From Calcarisporiella thermophila CBS 279.70 (Eukaryota; Fungi; Calcarisporiellomycota), in NCBI RefSeq assembly GCF_041956535.1, contig NW_027192198.1, positions 698,811 through 762,810 on the forward strand: DNA of 64,000 nucleotides, written 5' to 3'. Shown piece after piece: positions 30,766 through 52,244 of the stretch. The position numbers were made by a program, and so were the translations under genes. The notes under the pieces are model-generated. The model had not been told where the DNA came from. It worked only from the letters and a program-made list of their open reading frames with translations, and made no database searches. Numbering within the stretch: position 1 is the first letter of the stretch; each line of letters opens with the position of its first letter.

Positions 30766-31164
30766 TTATCGGCGCCCGAGTTTTTCAGATTCCTTCTTCA
30801 AATTCTCTTTAAACGCTTGAACAAAAGTATTTACTCGGTGTGATCCTTCTTGAATCAATGGTTGACCTAAAATTACGCATATATAAAAAGGGGTGTAAGT
30901 CCAGATGCACCTATATTCGTATCAGAAAGGAAAAAGAATAATGCCCAAACTTGAGATTTACTTTGATTTTGAAGCTTGGATACTTTCTCGTGAGTCTTGG
31001 CGGCCATTCGATGGAAAGTAGGACTTTGCAATAGCTGGTAAAACAAGAAATAAAATAAGAAAGAAAAATGAGTACCCCTGTGTATAAGCAGATGTATATC
31101 GTGATGGATTCACCCTTTCCGTAATGAACTGATTTGCCCAGTAGCTAATCAAACGTCCGAACAT
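30766..31164 (-). CDS. Small mitochondrial MRX7/NCBP2-AS2-like protein (3 exons)
   Basis: Spliced translation MFGRLISYWANQFITER|LLQSPTFHRMAAKTHEKVSKLQNQ|SQPLIQEGSHRVNTFVQAFKENLKKESEKLGRR*; the LLxSPxFHR motif is characteristic of the family. Confidence 0.7.
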
Positions 31165-31304
31165 TTTTATAAAAATGGTATTTTGTGCAGATGGAAGCTC
31201 TCAAAGCCGATTCAACAAAGAAAATAAAAAATGACGAGCTGCGCCACATTCTTAAATGGCACCCTAAGTCGATATTATAAAATAATGACATATAAGTTGT
31301 GTCG

Positions 31305-31999
31305 TGTTACAGGCAAAGGGAGATTTCGTGGAGAGCTGTGCGGATTCCTTAATAATAAAAATAAGAGATTGGTCTTTTAATAAAAGACTAATAATAAAAC
31401 TAATAATAATAATAATAATAATAATATAATGAAATAATAGCTTATCCTCACCTTAATAATAAAAATAAGAGATTGGTGAGGAACAGTAAAACAAAATAGA
31501 GGGGTTTAAATAGAATTAAGAGATAAAGGAAATAGCTCAACTGGTGTTCAAGGATAAATAAAGATAAACCAACAAAATAGCAATCAACCTCAACAAAGTA
31601 ACCATGAGGGAGCATAAGAGTAACCACGAGGGGTCGGCAACGTAGCGGTAAACAATGCTATTGGCTGCTCCACTTTAAAGATATCGCGCTTCCTGAATTT
31701 TTTTTTTTTTGATCAATCAACGGAGACTTTTATTAGTTTCCGTAGCTTACAAGAGTTTAATGATTACAATGAAATAAGAAAAGGGGGGAATAAAGGGTAA
31801 ATTAGATGTATATAGTGATCGGGTATTTGGTGAAAGGTATGAAGTAAAGAGGAGGGGAGGAGGGAAAGAGCGGATTGGGAGAGAGGAAGGGTTGCTTCGT
31901 CACTCCAGTTTCAGTCTTGCTCTATCCGATCGCGCTTCCTGAATGCCTATGTGACTGCCTCTGTGACTTCCCCGTACAAAAACCAATTATCTCGTAACA
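31305..31999. mobile_element. Solo LTR, family 1, copy A
   Basis: Begins TGTTAC, ends GTAACA, flanked by GTCG at 31301-31304 and 32000-32003; near-identical to 51050-52160. Confidence 0.85.
31699..31928 (-). mobile_element. 5'-truncated LINE 3' end nested in LTR1-A
   Basis: Poly-T tract, TSD ATCGCGCTTCCTGAAT at 31683-31698 and 31929-31944; sequence matches the 3' end of the LINE at 47164-47534. Confidence 0.85.
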
Positions 32000-32003
32000 G
32001 TCG

Positions 32004-32300
32004 NNNNNNNNNNNNNNNNNNNNNNNNNNNNNNNNNNNNNNNNNNNNNNNNNNNNNNNNNNNNNNNNNNNNNNNNNNNNNNNNNNNNNNNNNNNNNNNNN
32101 NNNNNNNNNNNNNNNNNNNNNNNNNNNNNNNNNNNNNNNNNNNNNNNNNNNNNNNNNNNNNNNNNNNNNNNNNNNNNNNNNNNNNNNNNNNNNNNNNNNN
32201 NNNNNNNNNNNNNNNNNNNNNNNNNNNNNNNNNNNNNNNNNNNNNNNNNNNNNNNNNNNNNNNNNNNNNNNNNNNNNNNNNNNNNNNNNNNNNNNNNNNN
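32004..32300. other. Assembly gap (N run)
   Basis: Run of N. Confidence 1.
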
Positions 32301-32525
32301 TTTCGTGTGCTCAAGATAGTTTAAGGAGATATTTGAAAAGAGATTGAAAATATAAAGAAACTAATAATACTCTTGTTACTTCTTGTCCTTACAACACTTA
32401 AGATCTAAAGACTATTTATACACTTAAATTACGTAAAGTAAGTCACAGAAAATATAATCCGAAGGCTGAACCAAAGTCTCGCTACGGAATATTAAATAGT
32501 AACAAACTATTGTCCGTGAAACCGC

Positions 32526-32827
32526 TTTTTTTTTTGATCAATCAATGGAAACTTTTATTAGGTTAATAGTTCCCAATATTACAAGAAGCAGACGTGAAAG
32601 AGCTTGACGCGAAGTAAGTTATCCACGTCATGTTGACGAGCATCGCTCATTGCGTCAGTAATAGTCGTTATTGTTGTGTTTATCGTGAAAGTCGTGTTTG
32701 TCGTGTTAGAGCCAAAGGGCAAGTGGACAGCAATCTCAAGAAGCGAGTGCTGGTGGGGATTGCGGGGTTCGAACCCGCGCCATTTCGATTATGGCACCTG
32801 AAGTGGACCACTGCACCACCTCTCCCC
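32526..32827 (-). mobile_element. tRNA-headed SINE (SINE-A) nested in LTR2-A
   Basis: Minus-strand head GGGGAGAGGTGGTGCAGTGG...GGTTCGAACCCC...TCCCCACCA with A and B boxes; poly-A tail; TSD GTCCGTGAAACCGC at 32512-32525 and 32828-32841; absent from the second LTR2 copy. Confidence 0.85.
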
Positions 32828-32910
32828 GTCCGTGAAACCGCTACTATTCGCCTATTTATCCTAGCTTACAGCATATCCCTTCTCTAGCACACGACAGTCG
32901 TCGTCACTTA

Positions 32911-32983
32911 GGGGAATTAGCTCAAATGGTAGAGCGCTCGCTTAGCATGCGAGAGGCACGGGGATCGATACCCCGATTCTCCA
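32911..32983 (+). tRNA. tRNA-Ala (AGC)
   Basis: GGGGAATTAGCTCAAATGGTAGAGCGCTCGCTTAGCATGCGAGAGGCACGGGGATCGATACCCCGATTCTCCA; cloverleaf, AGC anticodon, G3:U70, downstream T-run. Confidence 0.97.
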
Positions 32984-33188
32984 CTCCATTTTTGTTTTGT
33001 CCTAGGGCTGTTTCTTATTTCCAAAGCACGCCTGAATACATCTTTTGACTAGCTGCGTCATATTTCTTAATTTGTAGTGTGCTCTTTCTCTCCAAAATTT
33101 TGGCAGCCACAGAATTTCAGATTATGTTCAATTTTCTTTAATTATCTTGCCAAGCTCACGATTTTCTATTGAATCTTTGAAAGAAAAA

Positions 33189-46489: not shown

Positions 46490-47146
46490 TTTTTATTGTC
46501 ATTAGCGAGACTTCATTGTATGAGAAGGCTCTTAATTAAGTACAATAGCTACATTAATGAAGGAATCGAATGAAAGAAAGGTTAAGAGTTAAGGAAGAAT
46601 ATGAATTCGGGGTGGTATGGTGGACACAACGTTATATTTAACTCAAATTGGAAAAAGTGTGGCAAACCTCATCTAACTGTGGGTATCAGAGTAAGGTTGA
46701 TAAACGAGATGAAAGGTGAAAGGGGAGAAGAGTTAAGGAGAAGTAGAAGTAAATGTTGCTGCATCATTCCAGTACCAGTGCCACTCTAATAACACTTTCT
46801 TCAACCATTTGAACCACCTGCTTCAAAACTGTTCCATTTGTCGCTTTCTTCGTTCTATTGTTAATTCGGCTCCTATAACCCCTCAATATCCAGTTTGGCA
46901 CGGTTGATGATAGTCTCAATTGAAGACAGAGGCAATACTAGAGCAAGAGCCAGACACGACAGGACGGAGAGTTTGGAAAAGACAGAAAATACTGATAGAG
47001 AACATAGACGCGACAAGCAAGGCACAGAATTATTAGAGAATCCAAGCACGTTTTTTTGTGCTGGTGGGAGTTACGGGATTCGAAACCCGCACCATCTCGA
47101 TGGTACCGAAGAGCGGTTACCACTAAGCTACTCCACCCCCTATCCC
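46490..47146 (-). mobile_element. tRNA-headed element with a LINE ORF2-derived 3' body (SINE-B)
   Basis: Head ...GGAGTAGCTTAGTGG...GGTTTCGAATCCC...CCCACCAGCAC; body encodes degenerate ETIINRAKLDIE-GVIGAEL; degenerate TSD (14/17) at 46471-46487 and 47147-47163. Confidence 0.65.
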
Positions 47147-47163
47147 GGAGGGAGTGGAAATGA

Positions 47164-48016
47164 TTTTTTTTTTGATCAATCAACGGAGTCTTTAATTAGT
47201 TTCTGTAGCTTACAAGAGTTTAATGATTACAATGAAAAAAGAAAGGGGGAATAAAGGGGTGGGGCTATATTTAGGTGGCAAGGTGGAAGTTAGATTTTGA
47301 CAATTTATGTTAGCCCAGAAAGGGAGAGAAGAGAGGAAGGCAAAGAAACGCAAGGGGGTAAGAACATAGAGAAGGTGATAAACGTGGAGTAAGGGAATAA
47401 AGGGTAGATTAGATGTATATAGTGATCGGGTATTTGGTGAAAGATATGAAGTAAAGAGGAGGAGAGGAGGTAAAGAGTGGATAGGGAGAGAGGAAGGGTT
47501 GCTTCGTCACTCCAGTTTTAGTTTTGCTCTATCCTAACTTTCTATTACCGCTCCCTGACTGCACCACCTTCTTCGGAATAACTCTATCTCTCATCTTATT
47601 CGTGCCTTTATCAGTTCACCTCCCATAGCCTCCTCGATGTCCATTTTGGCACGGAGGATGATTGTCTCGGGTGATGCTCGAGTGCATTCGAAATGGTAGG
47701 CAATTCGGTCCCGATGAATTTGCCATAATACCGAATCAAAGACGATTTGAGCCGCGTGTTTTATGTCCTCGGGGCTTCTGGTAGGTCGCCAAGTACGAGA
47801 TTTCTGGGATCCAGCACCTGAGTGTTTAGGGGACCTGAGATGGTGTGGATACACCTCTCCGCCCAATGCCACACTGACGTGAGTTCGGGGCATTCGAAGA
47901 AGGTGTGACGGATGGGGTCCTCGGAGCGTTACAGCGGGTATATTTCGTGTCATGGCCGGACGGGATCCGGTGCTTTCCACCAAAGATGGCCGTAATCCTT
48001 CGTGTCATGGCCGGGG
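47164..48016 (-). mobile_element. 5'-truncated L1-clade LINE (zf-RVT C-terminus + 3'UTR + poly-A), degenerate
   Basis: Poly-T on + strand. With frameshifts it translates as HRIPSGH..xTRC..ED.IRHTFFECP...VLWQIHRDRIAYHFE...ETIILRAKMDIEE...FRRRW. No TSD found. Confidence 0.8.
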
Positions 48017-48078: not shown

Positions 48079-48151
48079 GGGGAATTAGCTCAAATGGTAG
48101 AGCGCTCGCTTAGCATGCGAGAGGCACGGGGATCGATACCCCGATTCTCCA
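48079..48151 (+). tRNA. tRNA-Ala (AGC)
   Basis: Identical to 32911-32983; followed by TTTTT. Confidence 0.97.
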
Positions 48152-48779: not shown

Positions 48780-49083
48780 CGATCATGGAATATATTACAA
48801 GTTCCAGGGATATTCACGTCGACTTCGTTTGTCGGAGGACGAGGTAGTCTATCGGTTTATCGATGGTCTAAAGCTTCATTGTCACATTGCAGTTCGGCTA
48901 AGATATCCCGAAACTTTGGAGGAGATAGTGGCAATTGCATCCAGGCATGAGACGGCTACAGCGCCAATCCATATATCAGCTCTTCGGGGAACGGCATCCA
49001 GGAAGGGATATGATAATGTTAGTGAGGATCCAATGGATCTGTCGACAATTAATGACAACAAGAAAAGCGGAAAACTCGAATAG
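48780..49083 (+). mobile_element. Ty3/gypsy gag remnant
   Basis: YRFIDGLK...VRLRYPETLEEIVAIA and DPMDLS motifs typical of the gypsy Gag C-terminal region; no pol follows. Confidence 0.6.
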
Positions 49084-49758
49084 TGAGCCGGCTAGTTGCC
49101 AGGAATTGGCAAGGGAAAAAGCCAAAGATTTCTCTGATAATCATTTTATTCTTTAAGATATGGTGTGATAGATACTTTTGTGGGGTGATCAGTATACTTA
49201 ATATCATACGATTAACATATTTATCCAGAATCACCTTATATTCATATATATTACATACTTGTGATACATTATCTTTAGTATAAAAAGGAGAATACCTTTA
49301 ACTAGAATAAAGTGTGCTATTTTGGTATTGAGATAGAACCGGATTACTTTACAATCCACTTTGTGTCGTTTATTAGTCTTCTGAAGTGTTTAAGGAAGGA
49401 CAATCAAGAGCCTAGGGATAACTAGAGGATTGTCGAGATATACCTTATTAGACATATATTCGACGCAACAAATTGTTACGGGCGAAAGAAGATTTGTGTG
49501 GAGGGGTGTCCGGATCTTGATAAAATAAGAAAATTTATCTTTATAGTTCAGAGAATCGGTATAGAACATTGAAATAAACCGAGGGGTTTAAATAAGTCAA
49601 GAAAAGCTATACGTAAAATTAAGAGAAATAACGAAATCGAGAGCATATTAAGGTTGTCGAAATCCTTGTTATACATGTCGTGCTATCACGCTATTTTCGT
49701 CATGATACTCGCGAATATTGCACCTTCAGCTTACGCTACACTCGTGCTACACTCTCGA

Positions 49759-50624
49759 TTTTTTTTTGTTTCTCTAAGGACGCGGGAACTTGCGTCCTGT
49801 GGTTTATTTAATATATGTTACGAATGTGAGATGTGCTTCCAAACAAGTATTAGAAAAACATGGGATATAATTTAAAGAGTTCCATGCTTGGCAATGTCGG
49901 GTTAAGTGTTCTTTGCTTCCTCGAAGTCGAAGGCTACTTCTTGGGTGTCATTGATCTGGATTAGCGAGCTCTTTCCCCATTTTTGCTTGAACCCTTCTTC
50001 GTCTTTTTTCCTCTGTGCCTGTATCCATTGTCCTTTGATTGCTATGAGAAGATCTGATAAAAAGATACACTTGAATGCGATGTCCTCGTGTTCTTGGTTG
50101 TCCATTACAATTGCAATCCTGGTCTTATGTATACTCCACACCATGATGTCGTGTAACAACATGGAGACTTGTTGAACTTTGCCCCGCGTCTCCTCGTGGA
50201 ATCCAAAGAGTTTCTAGTACTTATGCATGCTTGTCCAGGGCTTATCGAGGATCTTTTGATGGAGCCTGTTAAACCACCTCCACAGATCTCCAATTCTCGC
50301 ACATTCAAAGAAGGATTGTTCTATCGTCTCTGTCTCTTCTCGTCGGCATCTCTTGCAGTTGGGGCTAGAGTGGTCGAAGTGTTGGGCAATTCTTGCTGTT
50401 ATTAACTTATGTTGAAGGAGATGCCATCGAAGGACCTTTTGCTTTGGTTCGCTTGGGCGTCTTGGCCAGCTCTTCCAGGCTCTTCTCCGCGCTCCTTCAT
50501 CTGAGGCAATGTGCGCCCATTCTCTAGTTACCGCAACTGGATCTGGTGATATCTGGTATAATCTGCCGAACTTGATAGAGTAGAGCTTGATATTGACACC
50601 TGCTATTTTCAAGTTCTGGGTGGG
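49759..50624 (-). mobile_element. 5'-truncated L1-clade LINE, second family
   Basis: zf-RVT: WHLLQHKLIT...CKRCRREETETIEQSFFEC, then VWSIHKTR...FKQKWG; poly-A; TSD GTGCTACACTCTC(G/A)A at 49744-49758 and 50625-50639. Confidence 0.85.
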
Positions 50625-50640
50625 GTGCTACACTCTCAAG

Positions 50641-50955
50641 TTTTTTTTTTTTGAGATTAAAGGATCTTTTATTGAAAAGTCCCCTATAAAGTTAAATGAA
50701 AGGATTTGCACGCTATTTCTAACGCTCAACCATTGCTTACATGTATTTCTTCTGACAAGTCACTATATTAAACGTATTTCTTTTTTTTCCTGAGGACGAT
50801 CAATATCAAATTATTAAGAACGAAGTAGCTTATAGCTCGATTTTTAGAGTATGTCCCGGACCCATCTCTAGTACAGGTGCCGTCGCCGGGAATCGAACCC
50901 AGCACACATTGGTTAAGCCCCGGGACTCTTAACTACTGTGCCATCCAGGGACGGC
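50641..50955 (-). mobile_element. tRNA-headed SINE (SINE-C)
   Basis: Head GCCGTC...TGGCACAGTAG...GGTTCGATTCC...GACGGCA; tail AATAAAAGATCC plus poly-A; TSD GTGCTACACTCTC(A/G)AG at 50625-50640 and 50957-50972. Confidence 0.8.
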
Positions 50956-51049
50956 GGTGCTACACTCTCGAGTGACTTGGTTACTAACCTAACCTAAGAC
51001 TGTCAATGTGACTTGCCCGTACCAAAAACCAATTTTCTCTCAACAAAAT

Positions 51050-52160
51050 TGTTACAGGCAAAGGGAGATTTCGTGGAGAGCTGTGCGGATTCCTTAATAA
51101 TAAAAATAAGAGATTGGTGAGGAATATTAAAACAAAATAGAGGGGTTTAAATGGAATTAAGAGATAAAGGAAATAGCTCAACTGGTGTTCAAGGATAAAT
51201 AAAGATAAACCAACAAAATAGCAATCAACCTCAACAAAGTAACCATGAGGGAGCATAAGAGTAACCACGAGGGCGGCGAGTAACCACGAGGGGTCGGCAA
51301 CGTAGCGGTAAACAATTCTATTGGCTGCTCCACTTAAAAGATATCGCGCTTCCTGAATGCCTATTNNNNNNNNNNNNNNNNNNNNNNNNNNNNNNNNNNN
51401 NNNNNNNNNNNNNNNNNNNNNNNNNNNNNNNNNNNNNNNNNNNNNNNNNNNNNNNNNNNNNNNNNNNNNNNNNNNNNNNNNNNNNNNNNNNNNNNNNNNN
51501 NNNNNNNNNNNNNNNNNNNNNNNNNNNNNNNNNNNNNNNNNNNNNNNNNNNNNNNNNNNNNNNNNNNNNNNNNNNNNNNNNNNNNNNNNNNNNNNNNNNN
51601 NNNNNNNNNNNNNNNNNNNNNNNNNNNNNNNNNNNNNNNNNNNNNNNNNNNNNNNNNNNNNNNNNNNNNNNNNNNNNNNNNNNNNNNNNNNNNNNNNNNN
51701 NNNNNNNNNNNNNNNNNNNNNNNNNNNNNNNNNNNNNNNNNNNNNNNNNNNNNNNNNNNNNNNNNNNNNNNNNNNNNNNNNNNNNNNNNNNNNNNNNNNN
51801 NNNNNNNNNNNNNNNNNNNNNNNNNNNNNNNNNNNNNNNNNNNNNNNNNNNNNNNNNNNNNNNNNNNNNNNNNNNNNNNNNNNNNNNNNNNNNNNNNNNN
51901 NNNNNNNNNNNNNNNNNNNNNNNNNNNNNNNNNNNNNNNNNNNNNNNNNNNNNNNNNNNNNNNNNNNNNNNNNNNNNNNNNNNNNNNNNNNNNNNNNNNN
52001 NNNNNNNNNNNNNNNNNNNNNNNNNNNNNNNNNNNNNNNNNNNNNNNNNNNNNNNNNNNNNNNNNNNNNNNNNNNNNNNNNNNNNNNNNTCCCCGCTTCC
52101 TGAATGCCTATGTGACTGCCTCTGTGACTTCCCCGTACAAAAACCAATTATCTCGTAACA
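51050..52160. mobile_element. Solo LTR, family 1, copy B (with a probable insertion hidden in the gap)
   Basis: TGTTAC...GTAACA, AAAT on both sides (51046-51049, 52161-52164); CGCTTCCTGAATGCCTAT duplicated across the gap. Confidence 0.85.
51366..52089. other. Assembly gap (N run)
   Basis: Run of N. Confidence 1.
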
Positions 52161-52171
52161 AAATCAGGATT

Positions 52172-52244
52172 GGGGAATTAGCTCAAATGGTAGAGCGCTC
52201 GCTTAGCATGCGAGAGGCACGGGGATCGATACCCCGATTCTCCA
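52172..52244 (+). tRNA. tRNA-Ala (AGC)
   Basis: Identical to the other two copies; followed by TTTTTT. Confidence 0.97.

Follow-up and report, generated by a model that had tools for sequence, protein, structure and literature searches.

At least two long terminal repeat (LTR) retrotransposons of different Ty3/gypsy families appear to have entered the same four base pairs, GTCG, one after the other, just upstream of a tRNA-Ala(AGC) gene in the fungus Calcarisporiella thermophila CBS 279.70 (we put the probability of this reading at roughly 0.8). The locus lies in a stretch of 64,000 nucleotides of contig NW_027192198.1 (assembly GCF_041956535.1, positions 698,811 to 762,810, forward strand), hereafter the window, whose own numbering is used throughout. 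The two LTRs found there, LTR1-A and LTR2-A, stand among three copies of GTCG, the last of which occupies positions −14 to −11 counted from the mature tRNA 5′ end. The stack comprises at least two LTR layers, and because the same position and shared 4-mers recur at many tRNA genes it is one instance of a general, genome-wide pattern.

Anatomy of the GTCG stack

An earlier reading made from the letters of the window (the sequence-only reading) had reported GTCG at 31301, 32000, and 32897 and a target 11–14 bp upstream of tRNA-Ala, and all three copies and the position are as it reported. It had also taken these copies to bracket both LTRs: GTCG flanks LTR1-A on both sides and LTR2-A on the right, whereas on its left LTR2-A borders a run of N. 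The features of the locus are as follows; the copies of GTCG, LTR1-A, both nested inserts, and the spacer were read directly in the sequence.

Up to 31300: unique DNA of the left flank (30950-31304 is single-copy)
31301-31304: GTCG, distal copy of the 4-bp target-site duplication
31305-31999, + strand: LTR1-A, TGTTAC...GTAACA
31683-31698 and 31929-31944: 16-nt duplication ATCGCGCTTCCTGAAT of the nested LINE fragment
31699-31928, − strand: 5′-truncated 3′ end of a long interspersed nuclear element (LINE) with its poly(A) tail (T run 31699-31710), inside LTR1-A
32000-32003: GTCG, middle copy; right duplication of LTR1-A and, if the gap is empty, also left duplication of LTR2-A
32004-32300: assembly gap, 297 N
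32301-32896, + strand: LTR2-A, a 280-bp LTR interrupted by a short interspersed nuclear element (SINE)
32512-32526 and 32828-32842: 15-nt duplication GTCCGTGAAACCGCT of the SINE
32527-32827, − strand: tRNA-derived, poly(A)-tailed SINE, inside LTR2-A
32897-32900: GTCG, tRNA-proximal copy, −14 to −11 from the mature tRNA 5′ end
32901-32910, + strand: 10-nt spacer TCGTCACTTA between target and tRNA
32911-32983, + strand: tRNA-Ala(AGC) (ARAGORN; Rfam RF00005, 58.6 bits)

LTR1-A is a complete solo LTR: its termini are inverted repeats (TGTTAC...GTAACA), it is flanked by GTCG to the left and to the right, and it has no internal sequence. After removal of the nested 230-nt LINE fragment and one copy of its 16-nt duplication it measures 449 bp, a length that matches solo copies of its own subfamily (449 bp at locus L027 and 452 bp at L026); this subfamily carries a 105-bp internal duplication (31374-31478 in LTR1-A) that is common to many copies. 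The LTR1 family as a whole has at least 48 matches in the genome and canonical TG...CA termini, and its solo copies span 345–452 bp and show perfect 4-bp duplications in all cases where the two ends can be read. An LTR1 end followed by GTCG occurs in the genome at this locus only.

For LTR2, five other genomic copies fix the length at 280 bp and the ends as TTTCGTGTG...CACACGACA, and their duplications are likewise 4 bp long (ATAA, TAAC, CATC, ATAC, and CAAA). A 5-bp duplication, which would read GTCGT at this locus, was considered and rejected, as it fails in 2/5 of these copies (ATAA followed by a, CAAA followed by a). With the SINE and one copy of its duplication taken out, LTR2-A is identical at 280/280 positions to a solo LTR2 on contig C24, and because of this match LTR2-A can be regarded as complete, beginning at 32301, immediately after the N run, and ending ...CACACGACA at 32896. 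The sequence-only reading had expected an LTR2 that starts with TG at 32004; instead it begins with TTTCGTGTG at 32301 and lies entirely outside the gap. The gap therefore holds no missing part of LTR2-A, and a count of two LTRs may be too low. That both elements were reduced to solo LTRs, as the same reading proposed, is borne out for LTR1-A; LTR2-A, complete but with an N run for its left flank, has probably undergone the same reduction, and a full-length element is unlikely there because the gap is estimated at only ~297 nt. LTR2 copies at four other loci (L001, L002, L004, and L005) and at 32301-32896 are 100% identical over 225–280 bp (n = 5), and all of the identical copies that were read through are solo. 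This identity points to very recent activity of a source element that is unassembled.

The left flank (30950-31304) has a single occurrence in the 28.2-Mb genome and matches none of the fetched repeat loci, which rules out an older LTR layer in it (candidate '...AATAATGACA'). On the right, the spacer TCGTCACTTA presumably holds the RNA polymerase III (Pol III) start site and the pre-tRNA leader, and a T5 run at 32989-32993, six bases past the end of the tRNA, is a likely Pol III terminator. The tRNA gene at 32911 is sequence-identical to copies at 48079 and 52172 (repeat family D3). The sequence-only reading had allowed that another tRNA might explain the arrangement, and none was found: the only tRNA-like sequence is the head of the nested SINE (32754-32825; 19.3 bits, below threshold). 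We tried this head as the real target and rejected it, its 5′ end lying 69 nt from the end of LTR2 and the SINE having its own 15-nt duplication inside the LTR.

The gap bears on whether the two sides of the locus belong together at all. If scaffolding had misjoined two contigs, or if the third GTCG were coincidental, there would be no shared target; the junction does sit in an unread gap, and both contig ends are repeat edges, the likeliest place for scaffolding errors. Yet the GTCG to the right of LTR2-A equals the duplication of LTR1-A, a match with a chance of 1/256 between unrelated sequences, so the two sides most plausibly belong together, and the same architecture is assembled without a gap at other tRNA genes. 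We therefore consider an artifact very improbable.

The gap also bears on the number of layers. Its ~297 nt may hide a repeat of ~0.3 kb, most simply another solo LTR, which would bring the stack to three or more layers; a second 280-bp LTR2 together with GTCG would take up 284 nt. In this assembly, N runs coincide exactly with repeat edges, and the run lengths seem informative where one can see the ends of the hidden insert (393 and 724 N correspond to SINE-sized inserts with visible target duplications, 4982 N to a LINE-sized insert in another LTR2). Other junctions of the form LTR, 4 nt, LTR, between different families, were assembled gap-free, and this one was perhaps harder, for example as a tandem of 100%-identical LTR2 copies; stacks of three or more LTRs do exist elsewhere in the genome. 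Against a hidden layer, both contig ends fit a direct join of GTCG to LTR2, gap sizes are only estimates, and there is no positive sign of gap content. The junction GTCG/TTTCGTGTGCTC has no match anywhere in the genome, and no unplaced contig carries a matching junction. We rate three or more layers at somewhat below even odds, and a spurious gap between directly abutting contigs marginally lower again, with the small remainder left to some other content. A hidden third layer would refine the explanation we favor, successive entry into one target, and would not replace it. The LTR1/GTCG junction and the reconstructed empty site were both absent from metagenome scans, which carries little weight because the collection may leave out records of this genome. 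Across the window and the other loci, N runs begin and stop at transposon edges, often just past 'TTTTTTTTTG', the opposite-strand reading of a poly(A) tail, and for this reason repeat content and insert counts taken from the assembly are underestimates.

LTR ends at tRNA genes across the genome

Right ends of LTR1-type copies lie 8–16 nt upstream of eleven tRNA genes, among them those for Ala(AGC), Ala(TGC), Arg (two genes), Asn, Trp, Gly, Glu, Leu, and Phe, and one more lies at 22 nt from a further Ala gene. LTR2 ends lie 11–18 nt from genes for tRNA-Ala, Pro (two genes), Thr, Asp, and Ile (six genes), in both orientations. LTR1-type and LTR2 ends alike thus keep to a short interval immediately upstream of tRNA genes. 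About 12 junctions have the form of an LTR end, exactly 4 nt, and the start of the next LTR, and a single 4-mer runs through each stack where the outer flanks are readable. These shared 4-mers include AGTC at tRNA-Asn (three to four LTRs), AAAT at tRNA-Ala 52172 and at tRNA-Gly, AAAA at tRNA-Ala(TGC), and TTTT, ATAC, and TTTC at further stacks.

The many LTR–LTR junctions exactly 4 nt apart would also fit a nesting preference, in which LTR2 would seek out the end of LTR1, or the duplication beside it, and not the tRNA gene. Against this, there are LTR2 copies 11–18 nt from a tRNA gene without any LTR1 in the interval (L001, Thr; L006, Pro; L015, Asp) and LTR1 copies that adjoin a tRNA on one side and unique DNA on the other (L019, L030, and L036), and in stacks with a visible tRNA the array ends 8–16 nt from it. 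We accordingly give nesting preference hardly any credence, and favor successive entry at a position set by the tRNA gene.

A sister stack at the tRNA-Ala gene at 52172 (49150-52171) has three layers:

~49469: end of an LTR4-type copy, ...CGACGCAACA, the outermost layer
49474-51045: LTR3, preceded by AAAT
51050-52160: LTR1-B, preceded and followed by AAAT

The LTR4-type end in this stack lies 1 nt nearer the tRNA than the AAAT target, and an LTR4-type end at a tRNA-Ile gene on contig C3 (L048) lies 2 nt nearer than the CAAA target of LTR2, which suggests that target offsets are family-specific. Of the LTR1-type copies directly next to a tRNA gene, 12/12 are oriented like that gene, and none turns its left end toward a tRNA gene (loci L018-L046). 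At another locus on contig C3 (L005, G000:C3:45354-48578, minus strand ~1470-1500), a SINE has a solo LTR2, flanked by TAAC, 11 nt upstream of its tRNA-like head. To the integration machinery, SINE copies seem to count as Pol III genes, a hint that these copies may bind Pol III initiation factors.

Ty3/gypsy relatives and known tRNA-targeting elements

Both families can be connected to coding sequences. On contig C9 (L072, G000:C9:524000-532000), the 5′ part of an LTR1 joins an open reading frame (ORF) with Retrotrans_gag, aspartyl protease (PR), RVT_1, and RT_RNaseH domains, and the next ORF carries H2C2 and rve. Judged by this gene order (gag, PR, reverse transcriptase [RT], RNase H [RH], and integrase [IN]), the LTR1 family is assigned to Ty3/gypsy. 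The C9 copy of LTR1 has itself been rearranged: the 5′ LTR breaks off at ~253 and is fused directly to gag (1330), and past the gag-PR-RT-RH and IN ORFs an inverted LTR1 (6909-6103) occupies the place expected of the 3′ LTR. Beyond the region that aligns with the SH3 domain of Ty3, it has 64 further residues with no Pfam match.

For LTR2, a gag remnant beside the diverged copy LTR2-B (48787-49080) is 79% identical to contig C65 (L074, G000:C65:1-4290), an unplaced 4.3-kb contig with one uninterrupted 1418-aa gag-PR-RT-RH-IN ORF that ends in a polypurine tract, followed by TGTCGT. The best solved match of this polyprotein is Ty3 Gag-Pol (7q5b, E 1e-133), and by homology the coding relatives of LTR2 are also Ty3/gypsy elements. 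The C65 integrase can be aligned with that of Ty3 across the C-terminal SH3 region, up to Ty3 residue 1451, and ends 15 residues beyond this point. LTR1 and LTR2 have no nucleotide similarity (local score 26 vs. 22 ± 3.5 for shuffles). The earlier statement that unrelated LTR families used the same bases is therefore sound for the LTR sequences; the coding relatives, in contrast, are both Ty3/gypsy, and their pol proteins are 35% identical across PR-RT-RH.

DGLT-A, a Ty3/gypsy element of Dictyostelium, lies 13–33 bp upstream of tRNA genes, and insertions of both Ty3 and DGLT-A are reported in both orientations. Ty3 of S. cerevisiae (Metaviridae) provides the precedent for TFIIIB-guided, nucleotide-precise integration (PMC8632968 and PMC5911963). 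Its integrase has a C-terminal SH3 domain and a vestigial chromodomain that bind TBP and Brf1; it docks on TFIIIB via these two proteins and joins LTR ends at −6/−2 relative to the start site, "with extreme precision" and with a 5-bp duplication (PMC8632968). Like Ty3, the elements here have coding relatives with Ty3/gypsy gene order and LTR ends ~10–16 nt from mature tRNA 5′ ends, the site is reproducible to the nucleotide, and LTR2 occurs in both orientations. Unlike Ty3, LTR1-type copies stand at tRNAs in one orientation only, and LTR ends here fall at 8–16 nt from the tRNA, compared with the 15–17 nt given for Ty3-type elements in PMC5014426.

Several points weigh against the reading of the GTCG stack as successive, Ty3-like insertions. 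The left junction of LTR2-A is unreadable behind the N run at 32004-32300, so that direct contact between LTR1-A and LTR2-A is something we infer. The assembly contains no full-length LTR2 element, candidate loci running into N, and the link between LTR2 and C65 rests on the diverged LTR2-B and on the TGTCGT that follows the polypurine tract as a start. For this gene, the position of the Pol III start site is assumed. The duplication is 4 bp in both families, vs. 5 bp for Ty3, and LTR2 starts with TT, not TG, in every copy read, departing from the canonical TG...CA. Finally, the C65 integrase has no room for the 66-residue Brf1-contacting chromodomain of Ty3, and because of this its tether may differ from that of Ty3. 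The earlier claim that the target is used as Ty3 uses it is thus upheld for the narrow, family-wide site upstream of the tRNA and not for the length of the duplication. On balance the elements here would work like Ty3, with one mechanistic hallmark missing in at least one lineage, and kinship within a clade is not implied.

Related fungal and amoebal elements occupy similar windows upstream of tRNA genes (PMC5911963, PMC5006619, and PMC5014426). Fungal Ty3/gypsy elements described in PMC5911963 and PMC5014426, namely Tj1 of Schizosaccharomyces japonicus, Tyl3, Tyl6, and Ylt1 of Yarrowia lipolytica, and beta/Tca8 of Candida albicans, have been found at, or shown to enter, sites only a few bp upstream of where tRNA transcription starts. 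The duplication of Tyl3 is 5 bp, compared with 4 bp here. The closest parallels extend to DGLT-A, which shares with C65 a single-ORF gag-pol and the lack of a chromodomain, and with the elements here the prevalence of solo LTRs upstream of tRNA genes; unlike DGLT-A, the present elements reside in a fungus (75 Fungal_trans domains) and keep to a tighter position window. This likeness may reflect either kinship or convergence. Alongside DGLT-A there are non-LTR elements whose target window lies farther upstream of the tRNAs (PMC5006619). A term search, which was not exhaustive, of PMC5911963, PMC5006619, PMC5014426, and PMC7175516 returned no mention of stacks of different families that share one duplication.

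Nested inserts, proposed order of events, and meaning

The inserts inside the two LTRs keep a distance of their own. The LINE fragment lies 55 nt from the right end of LTR1-A and the SINE 54 nt from the right end of LTR2-A, and hidden inserts lie 49–50 nt from the right ends of LTR1-B and of the LTR at tRNA-Asn. Measured from the tRNA, minus-strand poly(A) inserts (31683-31944, 32512-32842, 51349-52111; L048 553-5835; L021 1038-1430) lie at ~61–70 nt; in LTR3 the site is at ~85 nt. The identical LTR2 position was hit on two contigs, by the 301-nt SINE here and by the insert in 4982 N on contig C3. Because the LTR1 and LTR2 sequences are unrelated, a ruler of ~61–85 nt from the tRNA explains the insert sites better than a sequence preference, and across these few sites the pattern suggests that non-LTR elements in a fungus follow a second ruler, likewise anchored on the tRNA.

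As for the inserts themselves, the LINE fragment is 92–94% identical to 47159-47249 and 47393-47534 (repeat families D4 and D6). The SINE measures 301 nt, has a 3′ tail that resembles the LINE tail, and is absent as an insert from other LTR2 copies. At 47040-47534, a poly(A) LINE 3′ fragment ends ~18 nt upstream of the tRNA-like head of a second SINE (minus strand, ~47055-47140), a further retroelement just upstream of a Pol III-type promoter. The TRE5 non-LTR elements of Dictyostelium lie 40–54 bp upstream of tRNA genes. Like TRE5, the LINE fragment and SINE here stand at a near-constant distance from the tRNA (~61–85 nt), whatever LTR sequence was hit; unlike TRE5, they show a different distance, a fungal host, and a SINE partner, with targeting suggested by a handful of sites. 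A review table gives tRNA-targeted non-LTR elements for Dictyostelium only.

Most likely it is the Pol III initiation machinery, assembled on the tRNA gene, and not the upstream DNA that places the integrases, each of which makes a 4-bp staggered cut. LTR1 replaced all DNA upstream of −14, yet the next element cut the same 4 bp, which argues that the ruler is anchored on the side of the tRNA gene. If it measures from the gene, a second element will cut the proximal copy of the duplication and reproduce the same 4-mer. Re-use of the tRNA-proximal copy by each later element would give the order GTCG–LTR1–GTCG–...–LTR2–GTCG–10 nt–tRNA, with the older LTR pushed outward, and LTR–LTR recombination would have reduced LTR1-A, and probably LTR2-A too, to the solo state.

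The distances of the nested inserts suggest an order of LTR1, LINE fragment, LTR2, and SINE. LTR1 would have integrated first, followed by the LINE 3′ fragment, ~70 nt upstream of the tRNA and inside LTR1; since the fragment lies at a tRNA-measured distance, LTR1-A presumably adjoined the tRNA when it arrived. LTR2 would then have integrated at the proximal GTCG, and the SINE would have landed ~69 nt upstream of the tRNA, by then inside LTR2. Sequence ages fit this order, the proximal LTR2-A being 100% identical to four other copies and the distal LTR1-A ~92–98% identical to its relatives.

The GTCG stack is what a Ty3-type mechanism predicts. It adds new families to a known class of Ty3-like elements that target Pol III genes and overturns nothing; a known mechanism is extended to these families and seen unusually cleanly, the stack serving as a natural experiment. 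The anchor of the ruler is likely TFIIIB/TFIIIC, and the ruler is common to families with unrelated LTRs and with pol proteins only 35% identical. The stack and its nested LINE and SINE inserts allow transposon activity at one gene to be placed in relative order, and the fungal set of Ty3-like integrases, one of them without the Ty3 chromodomain, is material for studying how elements are directed to Pol III genes. More interesting than a single stack is the genome-wide system, in which several LTR lineages together with LINE and SINE elements are keyed to the tRNA genes of a fungus. A bolder interpretation, which we think rather unlikely, is that several Ty3/gypsy lineages that cut the same 4 bp at each tRNA gene, at least one without the Brf1-binding chromodomain, form with the LINE and SINE elements and their ~61–85 nt ruler an independent, Dictyostelium-like tRNA-targeting community with a tether unlike that of Ty3. 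If so, each tRNA gene would accumulate an ordered stack of LTR layers.

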